Under the pieces are notes generated by a model. It ran no database searches. It was not told where the DNA came from and worked only from the letters and a program-made list of their open reading frames with translations. Both the position numbers and the translations under genes were made by a program. This document shows, piece after piece, positions 14,697 to 64,000 of a stretch of 64,000 nucleotides of DNA. Numbering within the stretch: position 1 is the first letter of the stretch; the number at the start of each line of letters is the position of its first letter. The stretch comes from Tubulanus polymorphus (taxonomy: Eukaryota; Animalia; Nemertea): contig NW_027437449.1 of the NCBI RefSeq assembly GCF_964204645.1, positions 42,762 to 106,761 on the forward strand. The letters run 5' to 3'.

Positions 14697-15290
14697 TAGC
14701 TGTCGGACAGCACACTGGCTAGCTGTCGGACAGCACACTGGCTAGCTGTCGGACAGAACACTGGCTAGCTGTGAGACAGCACACTGGCTAGCTGTCGGAC
14801 AGCACACTGGCTAGCTGTCGGACAGCATACTGGCTAGCTGTCGGACAGCACACTGGCTAGCTGTCGGACAGCACACTGGCTAGCTGTCGGACAGCACACT
14901 GGCTAGCTGTCGGACAGCACACTGGCTAGCTGTCGAACAGCACACTGGCTAGCTGTCGGACAGCACACTGGCTAGCTGTCGGACAATTCACCAGCTATCA
15001 GCCAGTTCCCTAGCTGTCAGCCAGTTCCCAAGCTGTCAGCCAGTTCCCTAGCTATCAGACAGTTCACCAGCTATCACACAGTTCACTAGCTATCACACAG
15101 TTCACTAGCTGTCAGACAGTTCACTAGCTGTCAGACAGCACTATGGCTAGCTGTCGGACAGTTCACTAGCTGTCAGACAGTTCACTAGCTATCAGACAGT
15201 TCCCTAGCTATCACACAGTTCACTAGCTGTCACACAGTTCACTACCTGTCACACAGTTCACTACCTGTCACACAGTTCACAACTGTGTCA
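14697..15290. repeat. Minisatellite: 23-bp unit (ctagctgtcggacagcacactgg) x~12 grading into related 19-bp units
   Basis: Direct tandem periodicity. Confidence 0.92.
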
Positions 15291-15654
15291 GCAAAAGACA
15301 GACTTATGTTAGATGTTGCAACGAGAAAACTTGTATCTTCTAAATCACTGAATACTGTTTTAACCTGCCGGAGGAAGGGGTGCATACTCGACAGTCTTAC
15401 ATTGGAATGAATGTAATTAGGATCAGTTTTTTCTTTCATGGATTTTAATGTAAAAAATAAATGATTCTAAAAGTTGATTTCATTAACATTCATTACGCAG
15501 GAAGGGAAGCTGCTTTGTTAAAGTCAGGCATAAACGTGTGACTCAGTCGCACGTCTCACAACTTTACACCAGTTTTATATACGAGATTACATTTTAACTC
15601 GAGTCACATCATTCTGTACTGAACTGAACTCCGATGATTAAAATCTATAATTAC

Positions 15655-15707
15655 CGAGATTCTCAGCAGGTCTATCGACGGTTTGCTCCTCGTCATAGTA
15701 ACGTTTA
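15655..15707 (-). other. Third, shortened (53 bp, frame-breaking) paralog of the duplicated exon; UTR exon or decayed
   Basis: Same splice sites and flanks as 13849-13986. Confidence 0.5.
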
Positions 15708-15923
15708 CTGAAAAACAGAATTTAGAATTCAGTCATTTTATCTCAATAAGTGCAGCACATTTTTTCTGACCTAATTGTTGTGTCCAGTATTTACACAATA
15801 TTACACAATTTAGGGTTAGACTTTTTTGTTACATAATATGAATTTGTATAGCAATATAAAGTTCCATCAAAAACGATAAAAGTCTGAAATCTGTATATTG
15901 TGAATTTTGTATTAGTTTCAGCC

Positions 15924-18501
15924 CAAACTGTCGTTAGTTGTGTTCTAGTTGTGTCTGTCACGCGATTTCTAGTGGTAAATAGCGAATATCAAACTGTCGT
16001 TAGTTGTGTTCTAGTTGTGTCTACCACGCGATTTCTAGTGGTAAATAGCGGATATCAAACTGTCGTTAGTTGTGTTCTAGTTGTGTCTACCACGCGATTT
16101 CTAGTGGTAAATAGCGGATATCAAACTGTCGTTAGTTGTGTTCTAGTTGTGTCTGCCACGCGATTTCTAGTGGTAAATAGCGGATATCAAACTGTCGTTA
16201 GTTGTGTTCTAGTTGTGTCTACCACGCGATTTCTAGTGGTAAATAGCGGATATCAAACTGTCGTTAGTTGTGTTCTAGTTGTGTCTGACACGCGATTTCT
16301 AGTGGTAAATAGCGGATATCAAACTGTCGTTAGTTGTGTTCTAGTTGTGTCTACCACGCGATTTCTAGTGGTAAATAGCGGATATCAAACTGTCGTTAGT
16401 TGTGTTCTAGTTGTGTCTACCACGCGATTTCTAGTGGTAAATAGCGGATATCAAACTGTCGTTAGTTGTGTTCTAGTTGTGTCTGACACGCGATTTCTAG
16501 TGGTAAATAGCGGATATCAAACTGTCGTTAGTTGTGTTCTAGTTGTGTCTGACACGCGATTTCTAGTGGTAAATAGCGGATATCAAACAGTCGTTAGTTG
16601 TGTTCTAGTTGTGTCTACCACGCGATTTCTAGTGGTAAATAGCGGATATCAAACTGTCGTTAGTTGTGTTCTAGTTGTGTCTGCCACGCGATTTCTAGTG
16701 GTAAATAGCGGATATCAAACTGTCGTTAGTTGTGTTCTAGTTGTGTCTGCCACGCGATTTCTAGTGGTAAATAGCGGATATCAAACTGTCGTTAGTTGTG
16801 TTCTAGTTGTGTCTACCACGCGATTTCTAGTGGTAAATAGCGGATATCAAACTGTCGTTAGTTGTGTTCTAGTTGTGTCTGCAACGCGATTTCTAGTGGT
16901 AAATAGCGGATATCAAACTGTCGTTAGTTGTGTTCTAGTTGTGTCTGACACGCGATTTCTAGTGGTAAATAGCGGATATCAAACTGTCGTTAGTTGTGTT
17001 CTAGTTGTGTCTACCACGCGATTTCTAGTGGTAAATAGCGGATATCAAACTGTCGTTAGTTGTGTTCTAGTTGTGTCTACCACGCGATTTCTAGTGGTAA
17101 ATAGCGGATATCAAACTGTCGTTAGTTGTGTTCTAGTTGTGTCTACCACGCGATTTCTAGTGGTAAATAGCGGATATCAAACTGTCGTTAATTGTGTTCT
17201 AGTTGTGTCTGACACGCGATTTCTAGTGGTAAATAGCGGATATCAAACTGTCGTTAGTTGTGTTCTAGTTGTGTCTACCACGCGATTTCTAGTGGTAAAT
17301 AGCGGATATCAAACTGTCGTTAGTTGTGTTCTAGTTGTGTCTGCCACGCGATTTCTAGTGGTAAATAGCGGATATCAAACTGTCGTTAGTTGTGTTCTAG
17401 TTGTGTCTGCCACGCGATTTCTAGTGGTAAATAGCGGATATCAAACTGTCGTTAGTTGTGTTCTAGTTGTGTCTGCCACGCGATTTCTAGTGGTAAATAG
17501 CGGATATCAAACTGTCGTTAGTTGTGTTCTAGTTGTGTCTGCCACGCGATTTCTAGTGGTAAATAGCGGATATCAAACTGTCGTTAGTTGTGTTCTAGTT
17601 GTGTCTGCCACGCGATTTCTAGTGGTAAATAGCGGATATCAAACTGTCGTTAGTTGTGTTCTAGTTGTGTCTACCACGCGATTTCTAGTGGTAAATAGCG
17701 GATATCAAACTGTCGTTAGTTGTGTTCTAGTTGTGTCTGCCACGCGATTTCTAGTGGTAAATAGCGGATATCAAACTGTCGTTAGTTGTGTTCTAGTTGT
17801 GTCTACCACGCGATTTCTAGTGGTAAATAGCGGATATCAAACTGTCGTTAATTGTGTTCTAGTTGTGTCTGACACGCGATTTCTAGTGGTAAATAGCGGA
17901 TATCAAACTGTCGTTAGTTGTGTTCTAGTTGTGTCTGCCACGCGATTTCTAGTGGTAAATAGCGGATATCAAACTGTCGTTAGTTGTGTTCTAGTTGTGT
18001 CTACCACGCGATTTCTAGTGGTAAATAGCGGATATCAAACAGTCGTTAGTTGTGTTCTAGTTGTGTCTACCACGCGATTTCTAGTGGTAAATAGCGGATA
18101 TCAAACTGTCGTTAGTTGTGTTCTAGTTGTGTCTGACACGCGATTTCTAGTGGTAAATAGCGGATATCAAACTGTCGTTAGTTGTGTTCTAGTTGTGTCT
18201 ACCACGCGATTTCTAGTGGTAAATAGCGGATATCAAACTGTCGTTAGTTGTGTTCTAGTTTTTTCTACCACGCGATTTCTAGTAGTAAATAGCGGATATC
18301 AAACTGTCGTTAGTTGTGTTCTAGTTGTGTCTGACACGCGATTTCTAGTGGTAAATAGCGGATATCAAACTGTCGTTAGTTGTGTTCTAGTTGTGTCTAC
18401 CACGCGATTTCTAGTGGTAAATAGCGGATATCAAACTGTCGTTAGTTGTGTTCTAGTTGTGTCTACCACGCGATTTCTAGTGGTAAATAGCGGATATCAA
18501 A
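15924..18501. repeat. 66-bp minisatellite, ~39 copies
   Basis: caaactgtcgttagttgtgttctagttgtgtctNNNacgcgatttctagtggtaaatagcggatat, highly homogeneous. Confidence 0.97.
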
Positions 18502-21500
18502 CAAGACGCAGGTCTTTGTTTTTACCTGATTCTCCCTGATGTCTCATTCTGTGTGTATTTTTATAAAAACTACTCCCTTCCCCTAATCAGAATCACGTTC
18601 TGTTCAAACACAATTCCCGAAAATGACTACAATATTTAAAACAACGTACCTCTTGGTTTGTGACAAAACTGTATGAAAAATGTCCGTAGAAACTACTGCG
18701 CATTGGGTAAAACACTGAACTGCGATCAAATTGAGATTTCACCGACCAATATTTCACCGCACTCCCGTCACGTGATATATCGTATTTTTAGATATGAGGT
18801 AATAATCGTCACGTGTCCTGTGAACCCCGTACATTACCTGACATTACGTCGTTCGATTAGAATAAGACACTGATTATTTTTAGACCCCGTAGAAAACCGC
18901 TGTCGTTTCGGGCCACACGATTGGTCGTAACATTAAGAAATATTTGTGTAATCAACTAGATTTCAGCGTCCAATGAAATCAATTTTTAGGTCCTGAAAAC
19001 AACAATCTCAAAGAAATTGTTCCGAGTAAGAGTTCAATTTCAAGTCACGGCCGAGGGTATATAGTTTGAGAGTCTTGTGACAAAGGCATCATGTGTTATT
19101 TGAGTATATTTTAAGTGACCACATTTCACTCAGACTCCAGATCGACTTTGATAAACAAAGCTTTGAAGATGTCCGATCAAATAAACCTAAAATAATATCG
19201 TAAGTTATCAATGTATCTAGATTCAGATGGCGCTGTATAAAATACTAGTAATTAAAAGTGAATAAAATCACGGGTTTTCTGTTTATTCGAACTCCTTGTG
19301 ATTTGAGGCAGTATTTTCATTGGTTGAGATTTGAACCTGTGTTTGATGTTTGCGCGGTTGGTCTTGTAAATAAATAAACTGATATTATTGAAAAGTTCTC
19401 ATGTTCTTGTTCAGGATTGAGATTCTATGGAGATATTACTGTTTCACTAAACAGTCACATATGAATTTTAAGAACCGTGGAATTCGGTCCAGATTAGATA
19501 TAAACTTTGTATAAAGGTTTTTTTAAATTTTAAAGTTCAATCTGTGATCAATGCAAAGCTTATATCACCTCTTTAAAATCGAGACGTTGCTTGTGACATA
19601 AAAATGATAAAGTTCTATGCATTCTGATAAGAGTATTTGACTCATTGAGCTGAACGACAGATTTCAGTAAACAATTGAATTGACCTGATTGTACTTTTTA
19701 ATGGTTTCATATATAATTTTGTCGCTCATTCTAAGGAATATATATGTTAAACAATAAATTCAGCTAATGACCATCTGTACTATACATAATCAGGACTCAA
19801 ACAGGACCTAGCGCCTGATGTAGGTTCAGACATACACATTTTTGGTTAAGTTAACATTTTTAGAATTTTGATTTCAATCCATAAACATGCTGAACAGATT
19901 TAAGAGTCTTTAAATCAGCTGGTATATACTGGTCTATTATAACTGCTTTTTATTGTGTTAAATATCATCCTCGCTTGCCAGGGTTTGATTGCGAGGACGG
20001 TTAAATATATGATATTGAAATGATGCGCATACGACCAAGAGAATTCGAATGTTGAGACCTCTGTTGCCCGGTACAGATGCAGCAACTATTGATGTCTCGG
20101 TTATAGTTTGCACGTAATTTAGGCCCTAGATTTTCTTGTTGTATTAAGTCTAACATGTCTCACTTAAACCAATAAGTTTTTATGTGGAACCTGGGCCATT
20201 TTAACCTAACCAACGTTTGATTCTGATGGTTCGGTTAGATACGTGTTCATTGATGACAGGTGCGTCAACATATATCACATGTACATGTCACATGATAAAA
20301 ACCACTCGCAGTGAAAAGACTGATATTTTTGCTAATTTTAAGAATTGTATAAAATGCGTCTCATTAATCGATGTTTTCGATTTAGGGCCAAACTATTGTC
20401 GGAAGATTTAAAGCCTAGCTAAAGATGAATTAAACTTCTTTCAGCTGTTTTAATAGCAGCTTTGCGAAATTCCGCCGGTAGCATTTTATTTTAGTGCAAA
20501 GCCATTGCAACAGACGGGCTGAAATAAACACCATCAGAAATTGTCACCTTTCTGCCTTCAACCAGCCCTGGCAGTGGTTGTCTCCACAGGATCATCCTAG
20601 TGTACCCAACTGCCCAGACACCTCAAATTCGCGTGACTTTGACACCGACCACATTTCAAGCGGCTTTTTTATCTGTGTTTAAACTGCGATATCTCAGCTC
20701 ATAAACAACTCATTTTGATAACTTTCTACACTGACCTTAAGACGTTTTACGTTTATATCTTTTTGACGATTGAATTTAATTACGGTCACCAGTCACCAGT
20801 TTGAACCGGTTGTTTTCACAGTACGTGATATTTTCCATGAATTCCTTTCATCAATTTATAACCATTTTTATATCTTTATTTCTTGAAGAAAAGCTGTTAC
20901 TATTGGTCAAACAATATCAGTCACATGATTGACCTATTTCTGTACGTTATAGCATTGTTTATCGGTGTCCCGGAAAAAAATGTCCCATTTTTGTAAGGTA
21001 GGAAAACATGTCCCGGTCTATCATTACTAACTTTTTAATTTAGTCAATTTCACATCAAAATAACACCAGAGAACAAACTTGGCAATACATTTTGATTACA
21101 TTTTTAACATCTAACAAAGAATGGCTCTACTTTGATTTGATTAATTTGTATGTAAAATCCTCTTAAGTTTGACGTATTTATTTAAGTAACAGTGCTTTTA
21201 CTTAATAACTTTTCATAATGTTCTCCATTAATAATATATTATTTAGCAACTGCGCATTCATTCAATTCGATTGTAAAACCTTCTTAAATTTGACGTATCA
21301 TGATAATGTTAATATACACAATGAATTCTCATGTTCACTTGATAAAACTCGTTCCAAATGTGTGTCGTTAAAAAAGAATTCATACAATCTTATAAAGCGT
21401 TGACGCGGCCTGTAAAGGGAGATAAGCCTCATTCACTTTCCTAACATGTACGCCTATATATAATCTATACTTTCATATTTGCACTGAGTTTGTTTTTTTA

Positions 21501-23359: not shown

Positions 23360-23775
23360 AGTCACCACATCTGACTGGTCACTGGTCACCACACCTGACT
23401 GGTCACTGGTCACCACACCTGACTGGTCGCCGGTCGCCACACCTGACTGGTCGCCGGTCACCACATCTGACTGGTCACTGGTCACCACAACCTGATTGGT
23501 CACTGGTCACCACAACCTGATTGGTCACCAGTCACCACAACCTGACTGGTCACTGGTCACCACACCTGACTGGTCACTGGTCACCACAACCTGATTGGTC
23601 ACTGGTCACCACACCTGACTGGTCACTGGTCACCGCACCTGACTGGTCACTGGTCACCACACCTGACTGGTCACTGGTCACCACATCTGACTGGTCGCCA
23701 GTCACCACAACCTGATTGATCATTACATTTGACTGATTGGTTCACTGGTCACCACACCTGACTGGTCACTGGTTA
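23360..23775. repeat. 24-bp minisatellite (gtcaccacacctgactggtcactg), ~17 copies
   Basis: Tandem periodicity, expanded relative to the paralog at ~2800. Confidence 0.9.
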
Positions 23776-23814
23776 ACACAATGACCAGACAAACTTACAG
23801 TCCGCGTTTATCGT

Positions 23815-52200: not shown

Positions 52201-53699
52201 AGAAGGTGATGTTTAGATCAGGTTCGTTTAGTTACTCTTATTTATATCGAATATTTGATATGATTTTTGTGAATTGCTCTAATGATGTTATAATGAATGT
52301 TGTTTGATTTATTTTCAGTCTAATGGAGGAGGATCTCAATAACTGAAACCTGCGACACGTCTACACCTGAAATTGACTGCGCCTCAAGTTAATGAATTAT
52401 TGATTCTAAATGACTGTGATGTTTCATGCTGATTGGAGGATTTGGAGGGATGTCCCAGGTTCAAACCCAGTGATTCTGATCAGATGATAAACCAGGGTGT
52501 CTGATATATACTGATGAATAGTTACTACGACATGATCGCCACCTATTGGATTTCTGCTGAACCACCAAATTATTGGATTAATAGGAATACGTATTCGTAT
52601 TGGATTAAACTTTCAAACTGAAATGAATAACTACAGTTGTTTTCATCGATATGATTACAGAATGAATTTATTTGAGCAAAAAATTTCACAGATATTTGTT
52701 ACAGAAATACAGAACTTGTCGATACTCTCAGCCGTGCCCCGATGAAAAAACTATTAGGTTAAATACGTGTTGTGAGTCACCAATTCAACTTATAAGATCA
52801 TTTGATTGTTTCATTAATTGGGAATAATTTTAGAATGTTTTATTCGAACAATAGCTCGGAAGTTCACTAGAATTGCTACGTATTGCTAATTCCGTGGAAT
52901 TCATTACCCGCTAGTAATCCGGAGCGGTATCTAAAGCCATCCGCGGCTAGAACCGTGAACTCTTTAGTAAGTGCTCGGAGCGCAAAGCCTTAGTCCTAGT
53001 CGACCTCGATCTGCGCGGTCTACAGAACTAGCCCTCCCAAGTGGAGTATGTCCCATTTAAAAGAATGATGGCGGACGAATCAATCGCAATTTTCACTTGA
53101 AATATTTAGAAGCTTCTCTTTCAACGCAGAAGCGACAGAATGTCTTCAAACCATTTCAACATTGAAATACAGTAAGTAAATTTACTTGTGAATCGAATAC
53201 TTGTGATGTATGAAGGTGATTCGAGATGGAGAGCGACATAAAACAGTCCGGTTTAACCCCACGAGCAGCAGCAATCTCTATTCACTGATGCGTGCTGTAA
53301 AACCATCATTCAGTAAAAAGTATCAATAACATAAAGAGTGGATCGAGGCCTAAACTATTACTATCAATACAGATGTAGCATTTGACCCAGCGGATACCCT
53401 GGATTTTAGAGTGCTTTCTCTGACAGGTTTCTATGTTTATTTCAGGGTGATGCTCTACTAATTAACTGCAGTCATCAGGAAGCTCAAGGAATAACTGTTG
53501 TGTTTGGCGATGAAGTGAGTAATGACAATGACATATGATAAGGCTTATCGAGTGAAATACAGGATATTGACAAATTCAAGTTCTGAAATTACTCGCTTGA
53601 TGGCGCTAGTCAGAAACGGAAATTGGAACCTAAATCCACCACACGCGAGATTTTTACTATGAAAAATGCTATTTCTCATGTGTTTATCTTGTGTTTCAG

Positions 53700-53965
53700 T
53701 TACATACACGTTACGGTCACCTACCACAGCACAAGAGGAATATGGTAATAGCCGGTGGTGTAACTGCGTCTGTTATCGTAGCGCCAGTTGTCGCTAGTTT
53801 AGCCGTTGGTATCGGTGTACCGATATTATTGGCGTATGTTTACGGCGTGGTACCGATATCGCTGTGTCGCAGCGGTGGTTGCGGCGTATCGACGACTGAC
53901 TCCGGGCGGAGTTCGATTTGAGTTCGAAGAGAACGAAGGAAGTGGCCCATCGGGGCCTTACGCCC
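53700..53965 (+). pseudogene. RNF19A: RNF19-like pseudo-exon 2, cut at its splice donor by the PLE
   Basis: Other copies continue gccc|gtaagt; here gcccg is followed by ggttaggtttagag. Confidence 0.88.
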
Positions 53966-53966
53966 G

Positions 53967-55893
53967 GGTTAGGTTTAGAGATAGAGGTTAGGGGACCAAA
54001 CCGAAGGTTTGGAGACCCCACTAGTGCACGGGCAGCGGGTTATCCCTGTAAAAAAGTAGTGAGAGTTAATTGTTGTAGTGAGGCGGTCTACGGGACGTTC
54101 ATGCCTCGGGGCGTGTTCGTGTCGAGTCGTCGTATCCAGTCTTGTTCGGCTGCTTCGCGGATCGGTCTCGTGGAGCCTGGTAGGTGTTGGAGACCGTACA
54201 CCCGAAAGTGTTCGCGGGTGTGGTCGACTTGGTTGAAGTGGTCCGAGACTGGAGTCGAATTCTTCGTTCTGATGCGTGAGACGTGATGAGTGACGCGTTC
54301 TCGTAGAGACATTCCGGTTTGGCCGACGTACAGCATGTTGCACTTGGTGCATTCGATGCAGTATACAATTTCACGGGTCGCGCAATTAATTGTGCTGCGG
54401 ATCGCGTGCATTTTGTTGTGGCTGCGGCAAACGGTTGTTTCTCGGACGAGTGGACACGTACGACATCTCGGTGTTCTGCATTTCTCGGTGCCTCGACGTC
54501 GGGTTGACGGAGTTCTTTGAGTAGACCTGGAAATAGAAGAATTGGAAACAACGGAAGTATTTCTGTTACGATGTGGTGAAGAGGGGACTCGGGGAGGGGG
54601 TGGCTCCGTGGGTTTGAGCTGCGACGAAGTAAGGAGATCTTTGAGACTCTTGTGCTTGGTGTAGGCGGTGACCGTGGTTACCTCGTCAGACCGGCCGGTG
54701 GCCGTAGCCAGTTCCGTAAATCTGGTTCGGATGTTACGGGCTAGGGTTCGGTTGGCTTCGGAGTGAGGTAAGATAAGCGGTAAACGCTTTTTCGGCGGTT
54801 CGTCGGCCCGTTGTTGTTCTCGTAGATCTCGTTCGGCGTGGTGCCGTAGAGCTTGGCTTTTGATGTGTCGCAGTTCGCGGTCTTTGTAGCCACGACCTCT
54901 GAGTACTTTAAGGACGGTTCCGGACGCTGCGTGTAAGTCCGAATCGTTATTGCAGATGCGCCGGAACCGGAGAATTTGACTTTTAACTATACCGGAAAAT
55001 GTGTGTTTAGGGTGAAACGAGGATCGATGTAGTAATTGATGCGAATCGGTTGGTTTGAAGTAGACTTTGGTGTCTACTGTGCCACTTGTCTCGAATCGCG
55101 GGCCTTTGAAAGTGGTTACGTCCAGGAAGTTGACGCTGGTGTCGCTGATTTCGAACTTGAGTTTGATGGATCGGCTCACTGTTTGTAGGACGTCGATGAA
55201 TTGCATCAACGTTTCGCGGCCGTGTTCCCAAACTATGTAGATGTCGTCGATGAACCGAGCGTATAGCGATGGTTGGAGTTCGCTTCTGGACAGACCTTCT
55301 TTTTCCCATTCGGCTACAAAGATATTGGCATAAGAAGGAGCAAAACGCTTACCCATTGCGGTACCTTTTACCTGTAAATATGTGTTTTCGTTAAAGTTAA
55401 AGTCATTTTTCTTCAGGCTGATTTCGAGTAGTTTCAGCAGCTCGGCATCCGGGCGTCCCGGGTTTGGGTTATCTCGGAGAGCTTGTCGGATGCTGGCGAT
55501 ACCCTCTTCGTGGGGGATGTTGGTGTAGAGCGAATCGATGTCCATGGTGACGAGTAACGCATCGGCGCTAAATTGTTTACCGGCCAAAATATCTAGAAAG
55601 TGGTTGGTATCTTTGACGTACGACGGGTGACCGCGGGCGATCGGCTGCAAATAGTAGTCGATCCATTCCGAAATTTCGTAGGTTTCGGAGCCGCAGTCGG
55701 AGACGATCGGTCTCCCCGGCGGTACGCGATCGGGTACCGTCCACTTCTCGCGTTCTTTATGGATTTTGGGAAGCAGATAGAACTGCCTCTGTTTCGGATT
55801 ATCGGGCGGTAATAGATATTCGGCGGTTTTTAGCGGGATGATTTTTCGTCGAGCCATATTTTCGATGATTTCGCGAATTTCTTCCCCGGTCTG
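53967..55893 (-). mobile_element. 5'-truncated Penelope-like retroelement (copy 1)
   Basis: Near-identical to 55911-57837 (offset 1944); truncated at the RT N-terminus (QTGEEIRE). Confidence 0.95.
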
Positions 55894-55912
55894 GCTAGGG
55901 TTAGGGTTAGGG
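55894..55912 (+). repeat. Telomeric-repeat linker capping the truncated copy
   Basis: gctagggttagggttaggg between the two copies. Confidence 0.9.
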
Positions 55913-56031
55913 TTAGGTTTAGAGATAGAGGTTAGGGGACCAAACCGAAGGTTTGGAGACCCCACTAGTGCACGGGCAGCGGGTTATCCCTGTAAAAAAG
56001 TAGTGAGAGTTAATTGTTGTAGTGAGGCGGT

Positions 56032-58491
56032 CTACGGGACGTTCATGCCTCGGGGCGTGTTCGTGTCGAGTCGTCGTATCCAGTCTTGTTCGGCTGCTTC
56101 GCGGATCGGTCTCGTGGAGCCTGGTAGGTGTTGGAGACCGTACACCCGAAAGTGTTCGCGGGTGTGGTCGACTTGGTTGAAGTGGTCCGAGACTGGAGTC
56201 GAATTCTTCGTTCTGATGCGTGAGACGTGATGAGTGACGCGTTCTCGTAGAGACATTCCGGTTTGGCCGACGTACAGCATGTTGCACTTGGTGCATTCGA
56301 TGCAGTATACAATTTCACGGGTCGCGCAATTAATTGTGCTGCGGATCGCGTGCATTTTGTTGTGGCTGCGGCAAACGGTTGTTTCTCGGACGAGTGGACA
56401 CGTACGACATCTCGGTGTTCTGCATTTCTCGGTGCCTCGACGTCGGGTTGACGGAGTTCTTTGAGTAGACCTGGAAATGGAAGAATTGGAAACAACGGAA
56501 GTATTTCTGTTACGATGCGGTGAAGAGGGGACTCGGGGAGGGGGTGGCTCCGTGGGTTTGAGCTGCGACGAAGTTAGGAGATCTTTGAGACTCTTGTGCT
56601 TGGTGTAGGCGGTGACCGTGGTTACCTCGTCAGACCGGCCGGTGGCCGTAGCCAGTTCCGTAAATCTGGTTCGGATGTTACGGGCTAGGGTTCGGTTGGC
56701 TTCGGAGTGAGGTAAGATAAGCGGTAAACGCTTTTTCGGCGGTTCGTCGGCCCGTTGTTGTTCTCGTAGATCTCGTTCGGCGTGGTGCCGTAGAGCTTGG
56801 CTTTTGATGTGTCGCAGTTCGCGGTCTTTGTAGCCACGACCTCTGAGTACTTTAAGGACGGTTCCGGACGCTGCGTGTAAGTCCGAATCGTTATTGCAGA
56901 TGCGCCGGAACCGGAGAATTTGACTTTTAACTATACCGGAAAATGTGTGTTTAGGGTGAAACGAGGATCGATGTAGTAATTGATGCGAATCGGTTGGTTT
57001 GAAGTAGACTTTGGTGTCTACTGTGCCACTTGTCTCGAATCGCGGGCCTTTGAAAGTGGTTACGTCCAGGAAGTTGACGCTGGTGTCGCTGATTTCGAAC
57101 TTGAGTTTGATGGATCGGCTCACTGTTTGTAGGACGTCGATGAATTGCATCAACGTTTCGCGGCCGTGTTCCCAAACTATGTAGATGTCGTCGATGAACC
57201 GAGCGTATAGCGATGGTTGGAGTTCGCTTCTGGACAGACCTTCTTTTTCCCATTCGGCTACAAAGATATTGGCATAAGAAGGAGCAAAACGCTTACCCAT
57301 TGCGGTACCTTTTACCTGTAAATATGTGTTTTCGTTAAAGTTAAAGTCATTTTTCTTCAGGCTGATTTCGAGTAGTTTCAGCAGCTCGGCATCCGGGCGT
57401 CCCGGGTTCGGGTTATCTCGGAGAGCTTGTCGGATGCTGGCGATACCCTCTTCGTGGGGGATGTTGGTGTAGAGCGAATCGATGTCCATGGTGACGAGTA
57501 ACGCATCGGCGCTAAATTGTTTACCGGCCAAAATATCTAGAAAGTGGTTGGTATCTTTGACGTACGACGGGTGACCGCGGGCGATCGGCTGCAAATAGTA
57601 GTCGATCCATTCCGAAATTTCGTAGGTTTCGGAGCCGCAGTCGGAGACGATCGGTCTCCCCGGCGGTACGCGATCGGGTACCGTCCACTTCTCGCGTTCT
57701 TTATGGATTTTGGGAAGCAGATAGAACTGCCTCTGTTTCGGATTATCGGGCGGTAATAGATATTCGGCGGTTTTTAGCGGGATGATTTTTCGTCGAGCCA
57801 TATTTTCGATGATTTCGCGAATTTCTTCCCCGGTCTGTTCGAAGATCGGTTGCTGCAGCGGCTGATAATACTCGAGATCGGCTAGTTGGCGCATGGCTTC
57901 GAGGACGTAGTCGTCGCGGTCCATGATAACCGTAGCGGAACCCTTATCGGCGGCTTTGATGACAATATTAGTGTTGTCACGCAGCTGCTGGAGGGCTTCG
58001 CGTTCCTGTTTAGTGAGGTTATCATTTACGCGACGCGTATCCCTGGTTTGTTGAGCCAATTCGTGCGCGTCGTTGCAGAACCCGGCGATTACTGGTTCTA
58101 TTTCATCCGGAGCCCAACTGCTGGGCAGACGGAAACGCGGAGCCTCGCGGTCCGGTTTGTCACGGAAGTGATGGTCGAGTTTCACTAGCCGGTTGAATCG
58201 GCACACTCCCTTGGTGCGCTCGGTCGCGGCGGCATCAGAACCGATTTTTGGAGTCGGGCAATAAGTGAGGCCCTTTCGGAGTAGCTGATGTTGCGCCGGA
58301 CTTAGGCGGAGTGAACGTGTGAGGTTGACCACCGGGCTCCCGAGAGCGGTGACCGGATCGCGTCGCGCTTGGTTTGGTGCCGGTTCTTCGTGTTCGTCGG
58401 ACCTGGAAATGGAAGAAATCAGAGAAGCATTGGTTAATTCCGGTTGATTTAACTCACCAATAGTGGACCCGTTGGTCTCACTAATACTTAG
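56032..58491 (-). CDS. PLE ORF2: reverse transcriptase, CxxxxCxxC linker, GIY-YIG endonuclease; no ATG start, frame open up to the ORF1 end in the -1 frame
   Basis: LPKIHK, GRPIVS, MDIDSLYTNI, GTAMGKRFAPSYANIF, ARFIDDI, VNFLDV; CRTPRCRTC; IVYCIECTKCNMLYVGQT...R...HF...AAEQ...GMN. Confidence 0.95.
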   Translation of the reverse strand, partial: LSISETNGSTIGELNQPELTNASLISSISRSDEHEEPAPNQARRDPVTALGSPVVNLTRSLRLSPAQHQLLRKGLTYCPTPKIGSDAAATERTKGVCRFNRLVKLDHHFRDKPDREAPRFRLPSSWAPDEIEPVIAGFCNDAHELAQQTRDTRRVNDNLTKQEREALQQLRDNTNIVIKAADKGSATVIMDRDDYVLEAMRQLADLEYYQPLQQPIFEQTGEEIREIIENMARRKIIPLKTAEYLLPPDNPKQRQFYLLPKIHKEREKWTVPDRVPPGRPIVSDCGSETYEISEWIDYYLQPIARGHPSYVKDTNHFLDILAGKQFSADALLVTMDIDSLYTNIPHEEGIASIRQALRDNPNPGRPDAELLKLLEISLKKNDFNFNENTYLQVKGTAMGKRFAPSYANIFVAEWEKEGLSRSELQPSLYARFIDDIYIVWEHGRETLMQFIDVLQTVSRSIKLKFEISDTSVNFLDVTTFKGPRFETSGTVDTKVYFKPTDSHQLLHRSSFHPKHTFSGIVKSQILRFRRICNNDSDLHAASGTVLKVLRGRGYKDRELRHIKSQALRHHAERDLREQQRADEPPKKRLPLILPHSEANRTLARNIRTRFTELATATGRSDEVTTVTAYTKHKSLKDLLTSSQLKPTEPPPPRVPSSPHRNRNTSVVSNSSISRSTQRTPSTRRRGTEKCRTPRCRTCPLVRETTVCRSHNKMHAIRSTINCATREIVYCIECTKCNMLYVGQTGMSLRERVTHHVSRIRTKNSTPVSDHFNQVDHTREHFRVYGLQHLPGSTRPIREAAEQDWIRRLDTNTPRGMNVP

Positions 58492-58497
58492 TTTAAA
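58461..58497 (-). promoter_or_regulatory. -1 programmed ribosomal frameshift signal
   Basis: ORF1 ends GGU UUA AAC UAA (U_UUA_AAC in X_XXY_YYZ phase); 7-nt spacer; hairpin UAGUG(A)GACC-AACG-GGUCCACUA; the -1 frame is ORF2. Confidence 0.8.
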
Positions 58498-59999
58498 CCA
58501 CTGAGCCAGTGGTCCAGCAGGGTGTTAGCTGTACCACGGTTCCAGTGGATCCCGTCTCCAACAACTCTGAAGCGTCGATCATCGATGGGTGGTATCGCGG
58601 TGACGTCGTCGTGAATCTCGAGGAATTCGTTGAACTTCCGGGCGAACTGCTGGTGTTCGCGGGTCGTGTTGAGTTGAACGAAGTGGACGAACGAGTGCTG
58701 ATACTTCTTGACTGCGGCGTTGATCAGGCGCTGTGTGGTCTTCTTGGCGGTCGCTTCGAAGTTGTTGTCGCGGTTGTTGATTCCGACGCTGATGATCACC
58801 GTATCCGGGCGATCTCGGCGCTCCGGTACAGCATCGATCAGGTCGGCGAGATGAGCTATCTTGCAGCCGGGGAAGCTCTCGATCTGGACGTCATCCGGAC
58901 GGCGGCTTGATGTGATGTTACTCAGATTTGAGTCACCAATCACCAGAATGGGTCGCCGGGTTGGTGGCAGACTCCAATCCTGTTTCTTCCGACCCGTATT
59001 CGGATGACGGCGAACTTCCTGGGGCGCCATCGGTCTCGGTGTTGGCGTCGGACTTCGCGCTGGCAGTAGGCGCCCTGGTGACCTGTAATGAGACGGAGAG
59101 CTGGAAAGAGAAGAAGAGAGAGACGGCGTCGGACTGCTGGTTGGTGCGGTCGGCGTTCTCTGCGGCGGCGGCGGCGTCGGGTTTCGAGGCGGCGGCGTCG
59201 GACTTCTCGGTGGCGTCGGACTTCTTGGTGGCGGCGGCGGCGGCGTCGGCATCGGACTTCTCGGTGGTGGCGCCATTCTGGTTGGTGGCGTCCTGGTGAC
59301 ATCCGCGTAGCTTCTCGGTGACCTGGAATCAGAAAAAGAAGGAGGCGCTGTGGGCGCGGCGGGCGCGACTGCGGTTGGTGCAGGCGTCCTCGGCGTCGCG
59401 GGCTTTCGAATCTTCCGGCTCGGTCTCGGCGGCGGACGAATCTTCGGCTCCGTGGGTGCCTCCTGGTGGTGTGACCTGAAATGAGAAGGGGAAGAAGGTG
59501 GGTTAGATAGGACATTTCTGAGTTTGTCAGACAGAGCCTGACCGCGGAATTTCGACCGCAAATCCAGCGCGATGTTGAAAAGCCGGATCGTTCCGGGGCT
59601 CAGACGGGAGCCGAAATTCCTCCGGGCCCATGTCAGGGCGACATCCTGTGCTGATAGACAGTCCGGCAGAGGATCACCCATTAGCTGAACAAATGTGGCA
59701 GCGTAATGGATGGTCAGCTCTTTCGAAACTGTCTCCATCCAGACGTCCGCGGCAGCGTGCAGCTGCACCGTTACTGCTTCGGTGCAAGCCGCCGGCCGCA
59801 GGAACATCTTCAGATGGTCCTTCTTCCTCCGAATCGCTTTCGGACCAGAGCTCAACTGGGCAAGGTGGTGCGCCACTTGAAGAGCTCTATAGTAATTTTT
59901 CGGCGACATCCCGGGTTGCTGGTGTCGCTCAGGGCGTCCTCCGCCCTTGCTGGTCTTCTCAGCTGGTGGTCGTTTCTTCTTTCGAGTAGATCGCTCCAT
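58488..59999 (-). CDS. PLE ORF1: basic N-terminus, Pro/Ser/Thr/Arg-rich linker, SGNH/GDSL esterase domain (alternative start at 60050)
   Basis: Blocks ILVIGDSN, SFPGC, IISVGINN, DGIHW match SGNH blocks I, II, III and V. Confidence 0.88.
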   Translation of the reverse strand: MERSTRKKKRPPAEKTSKGGGRPERHQQPGMSPKNYYRALQVAHHLAQLSSGPKAIRRKKDHLKMFLRPAACTEAVTVQLHAAADVWMETVSKELTIHYAATFVQLMGDPLPDCLSAQDVALTWARRNFGSRLSPGTIRLFNIALDLRSKFRGQALSDKLRNVLSNPPSSPSHFRSHHQEAPTEPKIRPPPRPSRKIRKPATPRTPAPTAVAPAAPTAPPSFSDSRSPRSYADVTRTPPTRMAPPPRSPMPTPPPPPPRSPTPPRSPTPPPRNPTPPPPQRTPTAPTSSPTPSLSSSLSSSPSHYRSPGRLLPARSPTPTPRPMAPQEVRRHPNTGRKKQDWSLPPTRRPILVIGDSNLSNITSSRRPDDVQIESFPGCKIAHLADLIDAVPERRDRPDTVIISVGINNRDNNFEATAKKTTQRLINAAVKKYQHSFVHFVQLNTTREHQQFARKFNEFLEIHDDVTAIPPIDDRRFRVVGDGIHWNRGTANTLLDHWLSGLN

Positions 60000-60040
60000 T
60001 GACAGATATTTCGGCGAGGTTGCCTTCGTCAGTGTCAGTG
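59997..60040 (-). ncRNA. Minimal type I hammerhead ribozyme at the PLE 5' end
   Basis: CAcUGACA-CUGACGA-A-GGC(aaccuc)GCC-GAAAUAU-C^UGUCAaUG: stem I UGACA/UGUCA, palindromic AUAU in place of stem III, predicted cut between 60005 and 60004. Confidence 0.8.
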
Positions 60041-60050
60041 CAGGAATCAT

Positions 60051-60081
60051 GCTGAACTAGGATTAGACACGGGTTTTTATA
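60051..60081 (-). promoter_or_regulatory. Candidate Pol II core promoter (TATA + Inr-like)
   Basis: TATAAAAA at 60081-60074, 28 nt upstream of the A in TTCAGC at 60053. Confidence 0.5.
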
Positions 60082-60886
60082 CACGCAGCGCGCAACAAGT
60101 GAACAGTATTCGAGTTAGAAGTTAAGTGACCATATGAGACCTTGTGATCTAGACTAATTGTACTTCTGTGATCAAGCTAATAGACAAACTAGGGGTCTGA
60201 CTAATTATGCCTTTGATCCAGAGTGACTAGAAAACAGCACTAATTATGGCCCTTGATCTAGCTGTTGAATAGTTTGCGTTGATGTATAGTTCTAAAGATC
60301 TAAAGAGCGGCGTGTCTAATATAGAATTGAAAAGTTTATTTCGATATAACCTAATAAATACTCAAAGTGTTTTCTATAAAGAGAAATCTAGAATATGTAT
60401 TATTAATATACGTGAACCGGAATGTTCGAAATATGTCCGAGTTCAGTTTCAAAATTGCTTAATTCCTAATTAGTTTAGACGCGTTAATTAGCGGTGCGCG
60501 GCCGAGGCGTATTCCGATATACGCGTGTTTACTAAATAGTCGTAAATGGTGAAATCCGGTTCTTAGTTAATCAAGTTTTCTCCGTATTCTAAAGCTTTTA
60601 AGAGCGGATTTTGAAATATCTACGCGGTATTCTACCGAAAATTGGATGAATTAGACAGCGCGGCGTCGGCGATTTAGTAGGAAGTTATAACCCGTAAGAT
60701 CTAAATTACTGAGTGAGCGCGGGTGGTTGATTAGCCCTAATTATGGGTGACGAGTTTTGATAGAAATGTCTTACTAATACGTCTGTTTTAATTCTAAGTT
60801 CTTAAATATAATTCTATTAGATAAACTACGCTTATTTAGAGTTATTAGGATCGAGTAAAGCTATGTGAACTTGAACATGTAGGGTT

Positions 60887-62601
60887 AGGGTTAGGTTTAG
60901 AGGTATAGGTTAGGGGAACCAATCAGAGTATCAATTAATGTTTTTGTGTTCTTCAGATTAACCCACCACAATTAATCGAGAGTAATTAACTGATATCTTT
61001 TCAGAACCCCACTGTGACACTGGCAGCGGGAAAGCCGGCTAACTCCACCTGCCGGAAGGTATTAGAGTTAGGGATACCGAAAAGCAATCCACCACCTAGA
61101 CCGGGACTCGAACACCGGACCTTTCGTTTGCCGGACGACTGCTCTACCGATTGAGCTACCTGGGCGGACCGACGATTGCTCTCGGTTTCACCTCTATATC
61201 TCCGCACTTTCCTGGCACTGGTCGGGGTTAGGTTTAGAGGTATAGGTTAGGGGAACCAATCAGAGTATCAATTAATGTTTTTGTGTTCTTCAGATTAACC
61301 CACCACAATTAATCGAGAGTAATTAACTGATATCTTTTCAGAACCCCACTGTGACACTGGCAGCGGGAAAGCCGGCTAACTCCACCTGCCGGAAGGTATT
61401 AGAGTTAGGGATACCGAAAAGCAATCCACCACCTAGACCGGGACTCGAACACCGGACCTTTCGTTTGCCGGACGACTGCTCTACCGATTGAGCTACCTGG
61501 GCGGACCGACGATTGCTCTCGGTTTCACCTCTATATCTCCGCACTTTCCTGGCACTGGTCGGGGTTAGGTTTAGAGGTATAGGTTAGGGGAACCAATCAG
61601 AGTATCAATTAATGTTTTTGTGTTCTTCAGATTAACCCACCACAATTAATCGAGAGTAATTAACTGATATCTTTTCAGAACCCCACTGTGACACTGGCAG
61701 CGGGAAAGCCGGCTAACTCCACCTGCCGGAAGGTATTAGAGTTAGGGATACCGAAAAGCAATCCACCACCTAGACCGGGACTCGAACACCGGACCTTTCG
61801 TTTGCCGGACGACTGCTCTACCGATTGAGCTACCTGGGCGGACCGACGATTGCTCTCGGTTTCACCTCTATATCTCCGCACTTTCCTGGCACTGGTCGGG
61901 GTTAGGTTTAGAGGTATAGGTTAGGGGAACCAATCAGAGTATCAATTAATGTTTTTGTGTTCTTCAGATTAACCCACCACAATTAATCGAGAGTAATTAA
62001 CTGATATCTTTTCAGAACCCCACTGTGACACTGGCAGCGGGAAAGCCGGCTAACTCCACCTGCCGGAAGGTATTAGAGTTAGGGATACCGAAAAGCAATC
62101 CACCACCTAGACCGGGACTCGAACACCGGACCTTTCGTTTGCCGGACGACTGCTCTACCGATTGAGCTACCTGGGCGGACCGACGATTGCTCTCGGTTTC
62201 ACCTCTATATCTCCGCACTTTCCTGGCACTGGTCGGGGTTAGGTTTAGAGGTATAGGTTAGGGGAACCAATCAGAGTATCAATTAATGTTTTTGTGTTCT
62301 TCAGATTAACCCACCACAATTAATCGAGAGTAATTAACTGATATCTTTTCAGAACCCCACTGTGACACTGGCAGCGGGAAAGCCGGCTAACTCCACCTGC
62401 CGGAAGGTATTAGAGTTAGGGATACCGAAAAGCAATCCACCACCTAGACCGGGACTCGAACACCGGACCTTTCGTTTGCCGGACGACTGCTCTACCGATT
62501 GAGCTACCTGGGCGGACCGACGATTGCTCTCGGTTTCACCTCTATATCTCCGCACTTTCCTGGCACTGGTCGGGGTTAGGTTTAGAGGTATAGGTTAGGG
62601 G
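60887..62601 (-). mobile_element. Tandem array of five apparently identical 337-bp tRNA-containing SINE-like units plus a 30-bp partial sixth
   Basis: Units start at 60887, 61224, 61561, 61898, 62235 and 62572; each begins (plus strand) ggttaggtttagaggtataggttaggggaaccaa, similar to the PLE terminus. Confidence 0.9.
61093..61165 (-). tRNA. tRNA-like sequence (GGC at the anticodon position; probably not a translating tRNA); repeats at 61430-61502, 61767-61839, 62104-62176 and 62441-62513
   Basis: GCCCAGG-TA-GCTC AATCGGTA GAGC-A-GTCGT CCGGCAA ACGAA-AGGT-CCGGTG TTCGAGT CCCGG-TCTAGGT: A and B boxes intact; C33, stem mismatches and a bulge. Confidence 0.75.
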
Positions 62602-62662
62602 TTAGGGTTAGGGTTAGGGTTAGGTTTTAGGGATAGAGGTTGGGGGTTTGCACCCCCGGTGC

Positions 62663-63840
62663 TAGGGTTAGGGTTAGGGTTAGGGTTAGGGTTAGGGTTA
62701 GGGTTAGGGTTAGGTTAGGGTTAGGGTTAGGGTTAGGGTTAGGGTTAGGGTTAGGGTTAGGGTTAGGGTTAGGGTTAGGGTGGTTAGGGTTAGGGTTAGG
62801 GGTTAGGGTTAGGGTTAGGGTTAGGGTTAGGGTTAGGGTTAGGGTTAGGGTTAGGGTTAGGGTTAGGGTTAGGGTTAGGGTTAGGGTTAGGGTTAGGGTT
62901 AGGGTTAGGGTTAGGGTTAGGGTTAGGGTTAGGGTTAGGGTTAGGTTAGGGTTAGGGTTAGGGTTAGGGTTAGGGTTAGGGTTAGGGTTAGGGTTAGGGT
63001 TAGGGTTAGGGTTAGGGTTAGGGTTAGGGTTAGGGTTAGGGTTAGGGTTAGGGTTAGGGTTAGGGTTAGGGTTAGGGTTAGGGTTAGGGTTAGGGTTAGG
63101 GTTAGGGTTAGGGTTAGGGTTAGGGTTAGGGTTAGGGTTAGGGTTAGGGTTAGGGTTAGGGTTAGGGTTAGGGTTAGGGTTAGGGTTAGGGTTAGGGTTA
63201 GGGTTAGGGTTAGGGTTAGGGTTAGGGTTAGGGTTAGGGTTAGGGTTAGGGTTAGGGTTAGGGTTAGGGTTAGGGTTAGGGTTAGGGTTAGGGTTAGGGT
63301 TAGGGTTAGGGTTAGGGTTAGGGTTAGGGTTAGGGTTAGGGTTAGGGTTAGGGTTAGGGTTAGGTTAGGGTTAGGGTTAGGGTTAGGGTTAGGGTTAGGG
63401 TTAGGGTTAGGGTTAGGGTTAGGGTTAGGGTTAGGGTTAGGGTTAGGGTTAGGGTTAGGGTTAGGGTTAGGGTTAGGGTTAGGGTTAGGGTTAGGGTTAG
63501 GGTTAGGGTTAGGGTTAGGGTTAGGGTTAGGGTTAGGGTTAGGGTTAGGGTTAGGGTTAGGGTTAGGGTTAGGGTTAGGGTTAGGGTTAGGGTTAGGGTT
63601 AGGGTTAGGGTAGGGTTAGGGTTAGGGTTAGGGTAGGGTTAGGGTTAGGGTTAGGGTTAGGGTTAGGGTTAGGGTTAGGGTTAGGGTTAGGGTTAGGGTT
63701 AGGGTTAGGGTTAGGGTTAGGGTTAGGGTTAGGGTTAGGGTTAGGGTTAGGGTTAGGGTTAGGTTAGGGTTAGGGTTAGGGTTAGGGTTAGGGTTAGGGT
63801 TAGGGTTAGGGTTAGGGTTGGGTTAGGGTTAGGGTTAGGG

Positions 63841-63881
<41 letters not shown>

Positions 63882-64000
63882 GGGTAGGGTTAGGGTTTGG
63901 GTTAGGGTTAGGGTTAGGGTTAGGGTTAGGGTAGGGTTGAGGGTTAAGGGGTAGGTTAGGGTTCGGGTTTAGGGTTAGGGTTAGGGTAGGTTAGTAGGAA
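62663..64000 (+). repeat. Telomere (TTAGGG)n
   Basis: About 1.3 kb of TTAGGG running to the window end. Confidence 0.99.

Follow-up and report, generated by a model that had tools for sequence, protein, structure and literature searches.

How does a retroelement that encodes its own endonuclease (EN) come to lie, in one fixed orientation, directly beneath the telomere repeats of a chromosome? This question is raised by a 64,000-nt stretch of the genome of the nemertean Tubulanus polymorphus (contig NW_027437449.1, positions 42,762 to 106,761; here called the window), in which positions 53967-62662 form a chain of retroelements built around a Penelope-like element (PLE). PLEs are conventionally split into families without an endonuclease (EN−), which are telomeric, and families with one (EN+), which are dispersed (PMC8557442, PMC6431247); Athena is the sole PLE named in a 2023 catalog of telomeric retrotransposons (PMC10088271). 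A preliminary description of the window had set the chain against this division, and these sources bear out the contrast. We found that an EN+ PLE and noncoding partners in the chain share a telomere-like 3′ tail. Priming on the telomeric G strand under the guidance of this tail is well supported, as it explains the polarity of the chain, its in-register junctions, the truncated copies, the telomere caps, and the shared 3′ module. The 3′-OH that primed this synthesis was most likely supplied by a free chromosome end whose telomere was short or had eroded.

The chain consists of co-oriented elements that share a telomere-like tail

A 1.3-kb run of (TTAGGG)n closes the window on the plus strand, which identifies this strand as the G strand at a chromosome end. 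The run departs from (TTAGGG)n by single-base changes only. It contains 194 telomere 12-mer matches (0 in shuffles), and about 220 repeats lie distal to the chain. From the proximal to the distal side, the features are as follows (UTR, untranslated region; RT, reverse transcriptase).

53967..55893, minus strand: 5′-truncated PLE stub of 1927 nt with C-terminal RT, linker, GIY-YIG, and 3′ UTR; its tail adjoins unique DNA
55894..55912, plus strand: junction 1, GC and then 2.8 repeats, TAGGG(TTAGGG)2, in register with the next tail; 12-mer match at 55901
55911..60879, minus strand: full-length PLE of 4969 nt (4.97 kb) with an 830-nt AT-rich 5′ region, open reading frame 1 (ORF1), ORF2, and a 121-nt 3′ UTR
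60880..60888, plus strand: junction 2, TAGGGTTAG right after the PLE 5′ end, about 1.5 repeats, in register with the next tail
60889..62573, minus strand: five identical 337-nt noncoding units, found with Tandem Repeats Finder (TRF)
62574..62601, minus strand: sixth unit, reduced to its 28-nt tail and cut exactly at the hairpin foot
62602..62619, plus strand: junction 3, (TTAGGG)3
62620..62662, minus strand: 43-nt stub of a third element, with a GGGGGU/ACCCCC hairpin and a diverged tail
62663..64000, plus strand: terminal telomere tract, with first letters TAGGG; quality falls over the last 120 nt

The minus strand carries every ORF of the chain as well as the five Rfam tRNA matches, so the 3′ ends of all elements are centromere-proximal, as the preliminary description had stated. 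Its count of two to three TTAGGG repeats per junction was close: each of the three junctions carries repeats, but the middle one has only about 1.5.

The same description had noted a degenerate telomere motif at the start of each element, and our search agrees. Allowing at most one mismatch, a 28-nt telomere-like motif gave eight matches (0 expected and 0 in shuffles of the 64-kb window), all on the plus strand, at 53967, 55911, 60889, 61226, 61563, 61900, 62237, and 62574. No further match was present anywhere in the window, and a ninth, diverged version at 62620 forms the start of the third stub. The two PLE copies, beyond which the window holds no other, differ at four sites when the stub is aligned with the 3′ 1927 nt of the full element. 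These mismatches indicate two distinct copies and argue against an assembly duplicate.

Telomere repeats run in register into the element tails

If the tail of the RNA, through its final 7 nt, pairs with the end of the G strand, the telomere repeats should continue in register into each tail. This is the arrangement that we observed: the telomere tract passes in register from ...TTAGG into TTTAGAG (55913-55924 and 60891-60902), and the 3′ junctions in the window always follow TTAGG. At the base of the chain, GGG meets the tail directly, and the boundary at 53966/53967 is uncertain by at most three G residues. Tails that adjoin non-telomeric DNA, namely, those of the base stub and of an interstitial copy described below, stop at ...CCUAACCC with no more perfect repeats. 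The perfect repeats between elements are thus telomere DNA and not RNA encoded.

The 5′ side of the junctions is also constant. At 55896, 60880, and 62663, a base other than T precedes a cap that opens with TAGGG, and the same holds in three of the metagenomic relatives introduced below (L020, L030, and L050), amounting to six of the nine junctions read. This constant register could reflect a default of telomerase, a fixed stagger between nicks, or both.

The PLE encodes an intact GIY-YIG endonuclease and has a conserved frameshift site

The coding features of the full-length PLE are as follows.

56032..58332, minus strand: ORF2, 766 amino acids (aa) as listed; RT, CX4CX2C linker, and GIY-YIG with CCHH; frame open upstream to the slippery site
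58488..60050, minus strand: ORF1, 520 aa; basic N terminus, Pro-rich middle, and SGNH/esterase-like C terminus
58491..58497, minus strand: slippery heptamer U UUA AAC; the ORF1 stop follows directly, and the −1 frame is open into ORF2

ORF2 matched the Pfam families RVT_1 (9.5e-8) and GIY-YIG (3.4e-4; 21.3 bits, just below the 22.6-bit threshold). The catalytic residues of the nuclease had been described as intact, and an alignment with 15 relatives confirmed this, since the invariants GIY, YIG, R, H, E, and N are all retained (columns Y676, C680, C683, Y687, G689, R698, H702, E748, and N764). The linker upstream of the EN reads C-RTPR-C-RT-C, which is of the CX2-5CxxC type, a mark of Neptune and Nematis elements (PMC8557442). 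This motif places the window PLE on the Neptune side of the PLE tree and not with Athena. Judged by nuclease and linker motif, the element is predicted to be EN+ and Neptune-like; our RT tree covered metagenomic relatives only. Homologs of ORF2 numbered 3299 at E ≤ 0.001, headed by an uncharacterized T. polymorphus protein with 96% identity, and no solved structure was related to ORF2 by sequence. The contig is not human, given this nemertean match and the absence of PLEs from mammals. The N-terminal and RT blocks are conserved across the homologs (alignment A2).

The C-terminal part of ORF1 (58488-59051, minus strand) weakly matches the esterase of zebrafish ZfL2-1 ORF1 (4c1b; E = 0.0068). 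Homologs of ORF1 are distant, and several of them (among P0121-P0136) are fused to a NADAR domain (PF08719). A frameshift-separated ORF1 is an optional feature of PLEs (PMC8557442, Fig. 1 legend). We read the frameshift region as three separate frames, with ORF1 and ORF2 each taken alone. Of 77 relatives, 48 have this heptamer, in the same register, where the RT frame opens (background, 0.05 per 150 nt), which makes frameshifting a trait of the family. The sequences thus point to a conserved −1 frameshift that would join ORF1 to the RT-EN frame.

GC content climbs across the PLE from about 0.39 to between 0.51 and 0.58. Self-comparison of the 4969-nt PLE revealed no terminal direct repeat or pseudo-long terminal repeat (pLTR) and no long inverted repeats; the stub is set off from the full copy by telomere repeats and lies downstream of it, not upstream. 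Ribozymes were not detected by any of three approaches. At E ≤ 1, Rfam models gave only the tRNA-like matches and no hammerhead or hepatitis delta virus-like ribozyme in 53000-64000; a scan of 20 relatives at gathering scores found no ribozyme; and reading of the 3′ UTR by eye found no CUGANGA or GAAA hammerhead core.

Two further observations concern the region around the nuclease. Short pyrimidine-rich stretches ending in ...ttccag resembled introns. The one in the RT-EN linker was rejected as an intron, because removal of its 43 nt would break the frame and because the homolog P0002 has a coding insert at this position. In alignment A2 (columns 570-640 versus 830-890), a module ending in ...KNLKD.LV stands before the nuclease in the window element, P0002, P0019, P0043, P0044, and P0100 and after the nuclease in the remaining relatives, a permutation inside one protein family.

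A tRNA-like passenger carries the PLE 3′ module

The 3′ UTR of the full PLE contains, in the sense direction, a box (CCCGCUGCC.GUG.CAC.AGUGGGGU), a hairpin closed by GGGG/CCCC, and the tail CCCCUAACCUCUAUCUCUAAACCUAACC. We compared this module with the other elements of the chain. The tail of the 337-nt unit is identical to the PLE tail at 26 of 28 positions, and its box is identical at 23 positions over 26 alignment columns, 2 of which are gaps. Its hairpin has PLE-like closing pairs around a far longer insert. In the third stub, another hairpin is the dominant predicted fold (z = −2.4), and the tail can be aligned to those of the PLE and the 337-nt unit. The sharing of tail and box is solid, and that of the hairpin is suggestive. 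The comparison supports the earlier proposal that non-autonomous RNAs appear to use the docking motif of the PLE.

TRF reported the 337-nt array with a period of 337, 5.1 copies, and 100% identity, with tail joined to head without telomere repeats. Read in the sense direction, each unit comprises a 60-nt leader starting with CCGACCAGUGCC, a tRNA-like fold that thus begins 60 nt inside the unit, a T4 run, the box, the long hairpin, and the 28-nt tail. The tRNA-like parts are located as follows.

61093-61165, 61430-61502, 61767-61839, 62104-62176, and 62441-62513, minus strand: Rfam tRNA matches, 43 bits each against a threshold of 29

An A-box-like TAGCTCAATCGG and a B-box-like GTTCGAGTCC are visible in the unit. 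The preliminary description had counted five tRNA units. The number and the Rfam matches stand, but ARAGORN finds no tRNA and the anticodon loop is aberrant, so we rejected a working tRNA gene and call the units tRNA-like. The unit has no ORF of 80 aa or more, and the predicted fold of its full length does not exceed shuffled sequences in stability (z = 0.15). It has no second locus in the window, and L001 contains nothing of it beyond the tail. Because the T4 run follows the tRNA-like part, a plain RNA polymerase III transcript would end before the tail of the unit. By its sequence, the unit appears to work like a non-autonomous partner, similar to a short interspersed element (SINE), that acquired the 3′ end of the PLE. 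Since the five identical units have no repeats between them, one template jump or later expansion fits better than five rounds alternating with telomerase; the earlier suggestion that telomerase adds repeats between rounds fits this part of the chain less well.

A motif of the form UGCC(A/C)GUGCA is found 28-370 nt 3′ of the ORF in at least 20 of the metagenomic relatives, including families without telomere tails. It is present in the 3′ UTRs of L002, L008, L020, L023, L028, L030, L035, L055, L063, and L064, among others, and in the window at 54010-54030 and 61005-61030. A similar motif, (A/G)GCCAGUGCC, opens the sequence after the tail at tandem junctions and also opens the 337-nt unit. Motifs of this type could be sites of RT binding or initiation.

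Telomere-type tails are common among metagenomic EN+ relatives

The preliminary description did not recognize the combination of features in the window as described before. An alignment-based scan of metagenome contigs yielded 80 EN+ relatives that are 32-52% identical (82 loci were fetched in all). GIY-YIG is present in nearly all of these 80 loci. Of the 82 loci, 25 have tracts of (CCCTAA)n with n ≥ 2; on the coding strand, every such tract reads as CCCTAA and none as TTAGGG, and most of them are located 65-1150 nt 3′ of the ORF. The hexamer CCCTAA shows the same strand bias over 81 loci (417 sense versus 41 antisense occurrences), with composition-matched hexamers occurring 81-228 times in the sense direction.

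Telomere-type tracts 3′ of the ORF are present in 31 of 63 scorable relatives and in both major clades of a tree of 80 RT-EN ORFs. The trait is clustered on this tree, requiring 13 changes versus 24.8 when shuffled, and the GIY...YIG motif is retained in all 31 telomere-associated relatives. In one family, a shared intrinsic 3′ end leads either through perfect repeats (0, 2, 6, or 8) into unrelated flanks or straight into the 5′ start of another unit. Chains were found as well. In L050, the 3′ end of one PLE is followed by ten repeats and a second PLE; in L072, a full element is followed by eight repeats, a second element cut down to its nuclease, 2.5 repeats, and other DNA. Tail-to-head junctions without repeats occur in L050, L056, L057, and L072. 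L002, which comes from an unrelated sequencing run and is 61% identical, again has box, hairpin, and tail, with another stem sequence, on a contig that terminates in CCCTAA repeats. The 28-nt form of the tail is lineage specific, as L002 is the sole match to its own form among the 82 loci. The combination of an EN+ PLE with telomere-type tails and chains is therefore not unique to the window but common among its metagenomic relatives.

Some relatives place telomere-like sequence elsewhere. L059 has CCCTAA-type repeats inside the ORF, in the RT-EN linker (1921-2004), and the protein match breaks at this linker in L059 and in its sister locus L079. In L004-L006 (4700-5430), L012 (3760-4000), and L019 (2830-3100), the ORF is followed by a long degenerate telomere-like array of CCTGACCATAACCC or CCTAAACCTAACC variants and not by a single tail.

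The PLE family is not confined to chromosome ends

The T. polymorphus protein most similar to ORF2 is encoded at 12.14 Mb in the 32.06-Mb chromosome record OZ123226.1, where a sugar-transporter gene and NDUFV3 flank it. The locus contains a 5′-truncated, 2.8-kb PLE copy with 97.8% identity that ends in the same tail and then AT-rich unique DNA. There is no telomere repeat at either of its junctions and no obvious target duplication. This position shows that the PLE family is not restricted to telomeres, a conclusion drawn from one copy. The preliminary description had asked whether copies are confined to chromosome ends with TTAGGG junctions and had named a majority of interstitial, randomly oriented copies lacking them as contrary evidence; the sole other copy reached is interstitial and has no TTAGGG junction, which goes part of the way in that direction. 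A search with the ORF1 protein returned distant metagenomic proteins only and no further nemertean copy. A search at 1e-20 with the C-terminal 250 aa of ORF2 gave no match; as it covers proteins of 137-437 aa only, it says little.

A free telomeric end is the favored source of the 3′-OH

We lean toward a model in which RNAs with a common 3′ module are copied onto the telomeric G strand of a natural chromosome end, with the free end serving as the primer. The RNA tail would pair with a G-strand 3′ end finishing in ...TTAGG, and the paired 3′-OH would prime the PLE RT. The resulting cDNA would turn into the new chromosome end, which would leave the 3′ ends of all elements proximal. Frequent abortive synthesis would account for the stubs of 1927, 43, and 28 nt. 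Telomere repeats starting with TAGGG would then cap each new 5′ end, with telomerase as their presumed maker. The tRNA-like unit and the third element would be non-autonomous and borrow the 3′ module, and the five identical units probably arose in one template-jumping event or were expanded later. The PLE family also inserts in the chromosome interior, for which GIY-YIG is probably kept.

The pairing of the chromosomal 3′-OH with a CCCUAA-like tail had already been suggested in the preliminary description. The in-register junctions fit such pairing, but they do not separate a free end from a nick made by the EN. A possible, though less probable, alternative is that GIY-YIG nicks the G strand inside duplex telomere repeats and that the cut strand, once paired with the tail, serves ordinary target-primed reverse transcription, which is the behavior of silkworm TRAS/SART and Magnaporthe MoTeR elements; the flanking repeats would then have been in place already. 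Several points weigh in this direction and against a free end. A G-strand nick would leave the polarity and the in-register 3′ junction unchanged, and telomere DNA would flank the element on either side. The TAGGG register of the caps, seen at the three window junctions and in L020, L030, and L050, could be the product of a fixed 4-bp stagger between two nicks. The EN is intact in the window PLE and in all 31 telomere-associated relatives, and these families may need it at telomeres. In addition, the variable repeat number 3′ of identical elements fits nicks at differing depths in the tract. Other points weigh against the favored model more generally: the RNA 3′ end would have to form at the tail, where there is no ribozyme match (Rfam) or poly(A) trace; z scores of −0.7 to −2.4 give modest support to the hairpin fold; the evidence from the host genome consists of two genomic sites of the PLE family; and the chain is known from assembled sequence alone.

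We nevertheless favor a free end, with a telomere that was short or had eroded, because the inter-element tracts are only 9-19 nt long, although the distal tract measures 1.3 kb. About 220 repeats lie distal, and yet under nicking three independent insertions would each have had to fall within three repeats of an older element. The base stub, moreover, is joined directly to unique DNA 45 nt past an ORF stop. The interstitial copy in AT-rich unique DNA without a telomere repeat indicates, finally, that the nuclease is not strictly telomere specific.

A more far-reaching proposal, which we regard as rather unlikely, is that telomere docking through a portable box-hairpin-tail module is a widespread and possibly ancestral second mode of integration for EN+ PLEs, with the PLE RT as a back-up healer of chromosome ends. 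On this view, docking at telomeres would not be a side effect of endonuclease loss. The RT would seed an end on a broken chromosome and hand over to telomerase, and non-autonomous RNAs would use the same route. This proposal draws on the position of the chain base, only 45 nt past the stop of the last open frame. The box-hairpin-tail layout recalls that of telomerase RNA, in which the template has an adjacent boundary helix. PLE RTs are the closest retroelement relatives of telomerase.

Alternatively, the chain might have formed in one or a few continuous events, with the RT jumping from PLE RNA to PLE RNA to SINE-like RNAs and with RNA 3′ ends or telomerase RNA as the templates of the short repeats. 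Tandem and partial-tandem copies are a known trait of PLEs (PMC11167929, PMC8557442), the five units, 100% identical, follow one another tail to head without repeats, and direct tail-to-head junctions occur in the four relatives named above. As an account of the whole chain, this is nonetheless improbable. The four differences between stub and full copy call for at least two source RNAs or for elapsed time, tails adjoining non-telomeric DNA bear no extra perfect repeats, and the stub could form only if the RT left the first template at an internal position. That no end retrotransposition took place, and that the chain is a subtelomeric array made by recombination or unequal exchange or an artifact of assembling repeat-rich terminal reads, is highly improbable: the perfect identity of the 337-nt units and the reliance on the assembly would allow it, but each junction bears the reverse-transcription signature of a full or truncated 5′ end, telomere repeats, and a 3′ tail, the same architecture recurs in independent assemblies of other organisms, and the two PLE copies differ at four sites.

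Comparison with known telomere-associated elements

The closest parallels are Athena/Terminon of bdelloid rotifers and Coprina of fungi and protists, in which the tail pairs with the G overhang, truncated copies are capped and arrays are terminal, there is no EN, and a hammerhead lies beside the repeats (PMC6431247, PMC3846280, PMC8557442). The window PLE resembles them in having a PLE RT, an RNA that ends in reverse-complement telomere repeats beside a 3′ fold, 5′-truncated copies under short telomere caps, and head-to-tail arrays with the 3′ end proximal. It also shares with Terminons an esterase-type accessory ORF, which in Terminons is GDSL (PMC6431247, PMC3846280). It differs in its intact GIY-YIG, in a simple hairpin with a conserved box in place of a hammerhead, in a tail that is a fixed degenerate 28-mer and not perfect repeats, and in the interstitial position of one copy of its family. 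Although it behaves like these elements, the presence of the EN and the absence of a hammerhead set it outside the group. What is new is thus an EN+ PLE with a telomere-complementary tail and chains; the habit itself is already known from EN− PLEs. In the openly readable literature, we found no report of an EN+ PLE with such a tail or of a tRNA-bearing dependent of a PLE; partial precedent is possible.

With Neptune-type EN+ PLEs, the window PLE shares the C-terminal GIY-YIG with CCHH and the CX2-5CxxC linker. Described Neptune elements are dispersed, with pLTRs that contain hammerheads and with AT-rich or (TA)n targets, whereas the window PLE has a telomere-complementary tail and neither pLTR nor hammerhead. 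MjPLE01, an EN− Neptune-like element of shrimp (cited in PMC8557442), sets a telomere-leaning precedent in the Neptune clade.

The 337-nt unit recalls stringent pairs of long interspersed elements (LINEs) and SINEs, such as eel UnaL2/UnaSINE1, in which a short noncoding partner bears the 3′ recognition module of the autonomous element; here, the partner RT is that of a PLE. Its tandem array is also reminiscent of PLE-derived non-LTR retrozymes, whose arrays have been proposed to depend on PLEs (bioRxiv 10.64898/2026.07.22.740005), but the unit has no hammerhead.

HeT-A, TART, and TAHRE of Drosophila likewise form end-primed head-to-tail arrays with the 3′ end proximal, variable 5′ truncation, and a non-autonomous member. 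They are Jockey-clade LINEs with poly(A) in a genus without telomerase and have no repeat caps, whereas the elements of the window are accompanied by telomerase-type repeats.

Bombyx TRAS/SART and Magnaporthe MoTeR1/MoTeR2 are endonuclease-bearing residents of telomere repeats with fixed orientation, and they form arrays with short repeat tracts between the elements; the MoTeRs are an autonomous and a non-autonomous element with common ends. Both groups are listed as telomere-associated retrotransposons (PMC10088271). They are of the LINE type, with a nuclease of the apurinic/apyrimidinic endonuclease (APE) or restriction enzyme-like (REL) class and 3′ poly(A) or other tails. The window PLE, by comparison, combines a PLE RT with GIY-YIG, would pair through a telomere-complementary RNA tail, and has at least one family copy outside telomeres.

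The division between EN− and EN+ PLEs is blurred by an EN+ lineage that has a telomere-pairing tail, forms telomeric chains, and is represented by at least one copy in a chromosome interior. This lineage also provides a natural setting for comparing the action of one protein on two substrates, a free telomeric end and a nicked duplex. To reach a chromosome end, a passenger RNA apparently needs no more than a short, transferable RNA module. An unrecognized class of telomere-associated repeats may be present in telomere-to-telomere assemblies of marine invertebrates. The breadth across hosts adds to the interest of the finding, and the two possible sources of the 3′-OH and the restriction of host evidence to two sites reduce it.

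Other features of the window

Immediately proximal to the chain, positions 53700-53966 contain an open frame with a hydrophobic, membrane-span-like stretch and a stop at 53919-53921, 45 nt before the chain begins. There is no subtelomeric repeat buffer between this last coding-like sequence and the retroelements. Farther from the end, an intronless 907-aa ORF at 5272-7995 (minus strand) has a NACHT domain (1.1e-15) and is NLR-like; this ORF near a chromosome end has no annotated product on the record. A satellite block occupies 14697-18502 and 23361-23780, with repeats of 23 nt (12.6 copies), 19 nt (16 copies), 66 nt (39 copies), and 24 nt (17 copies). The 66-nt satellite, with 97% matches, spans a spurious 879-aa ORF, and the 24-nt unit is found again at 2801-2866.

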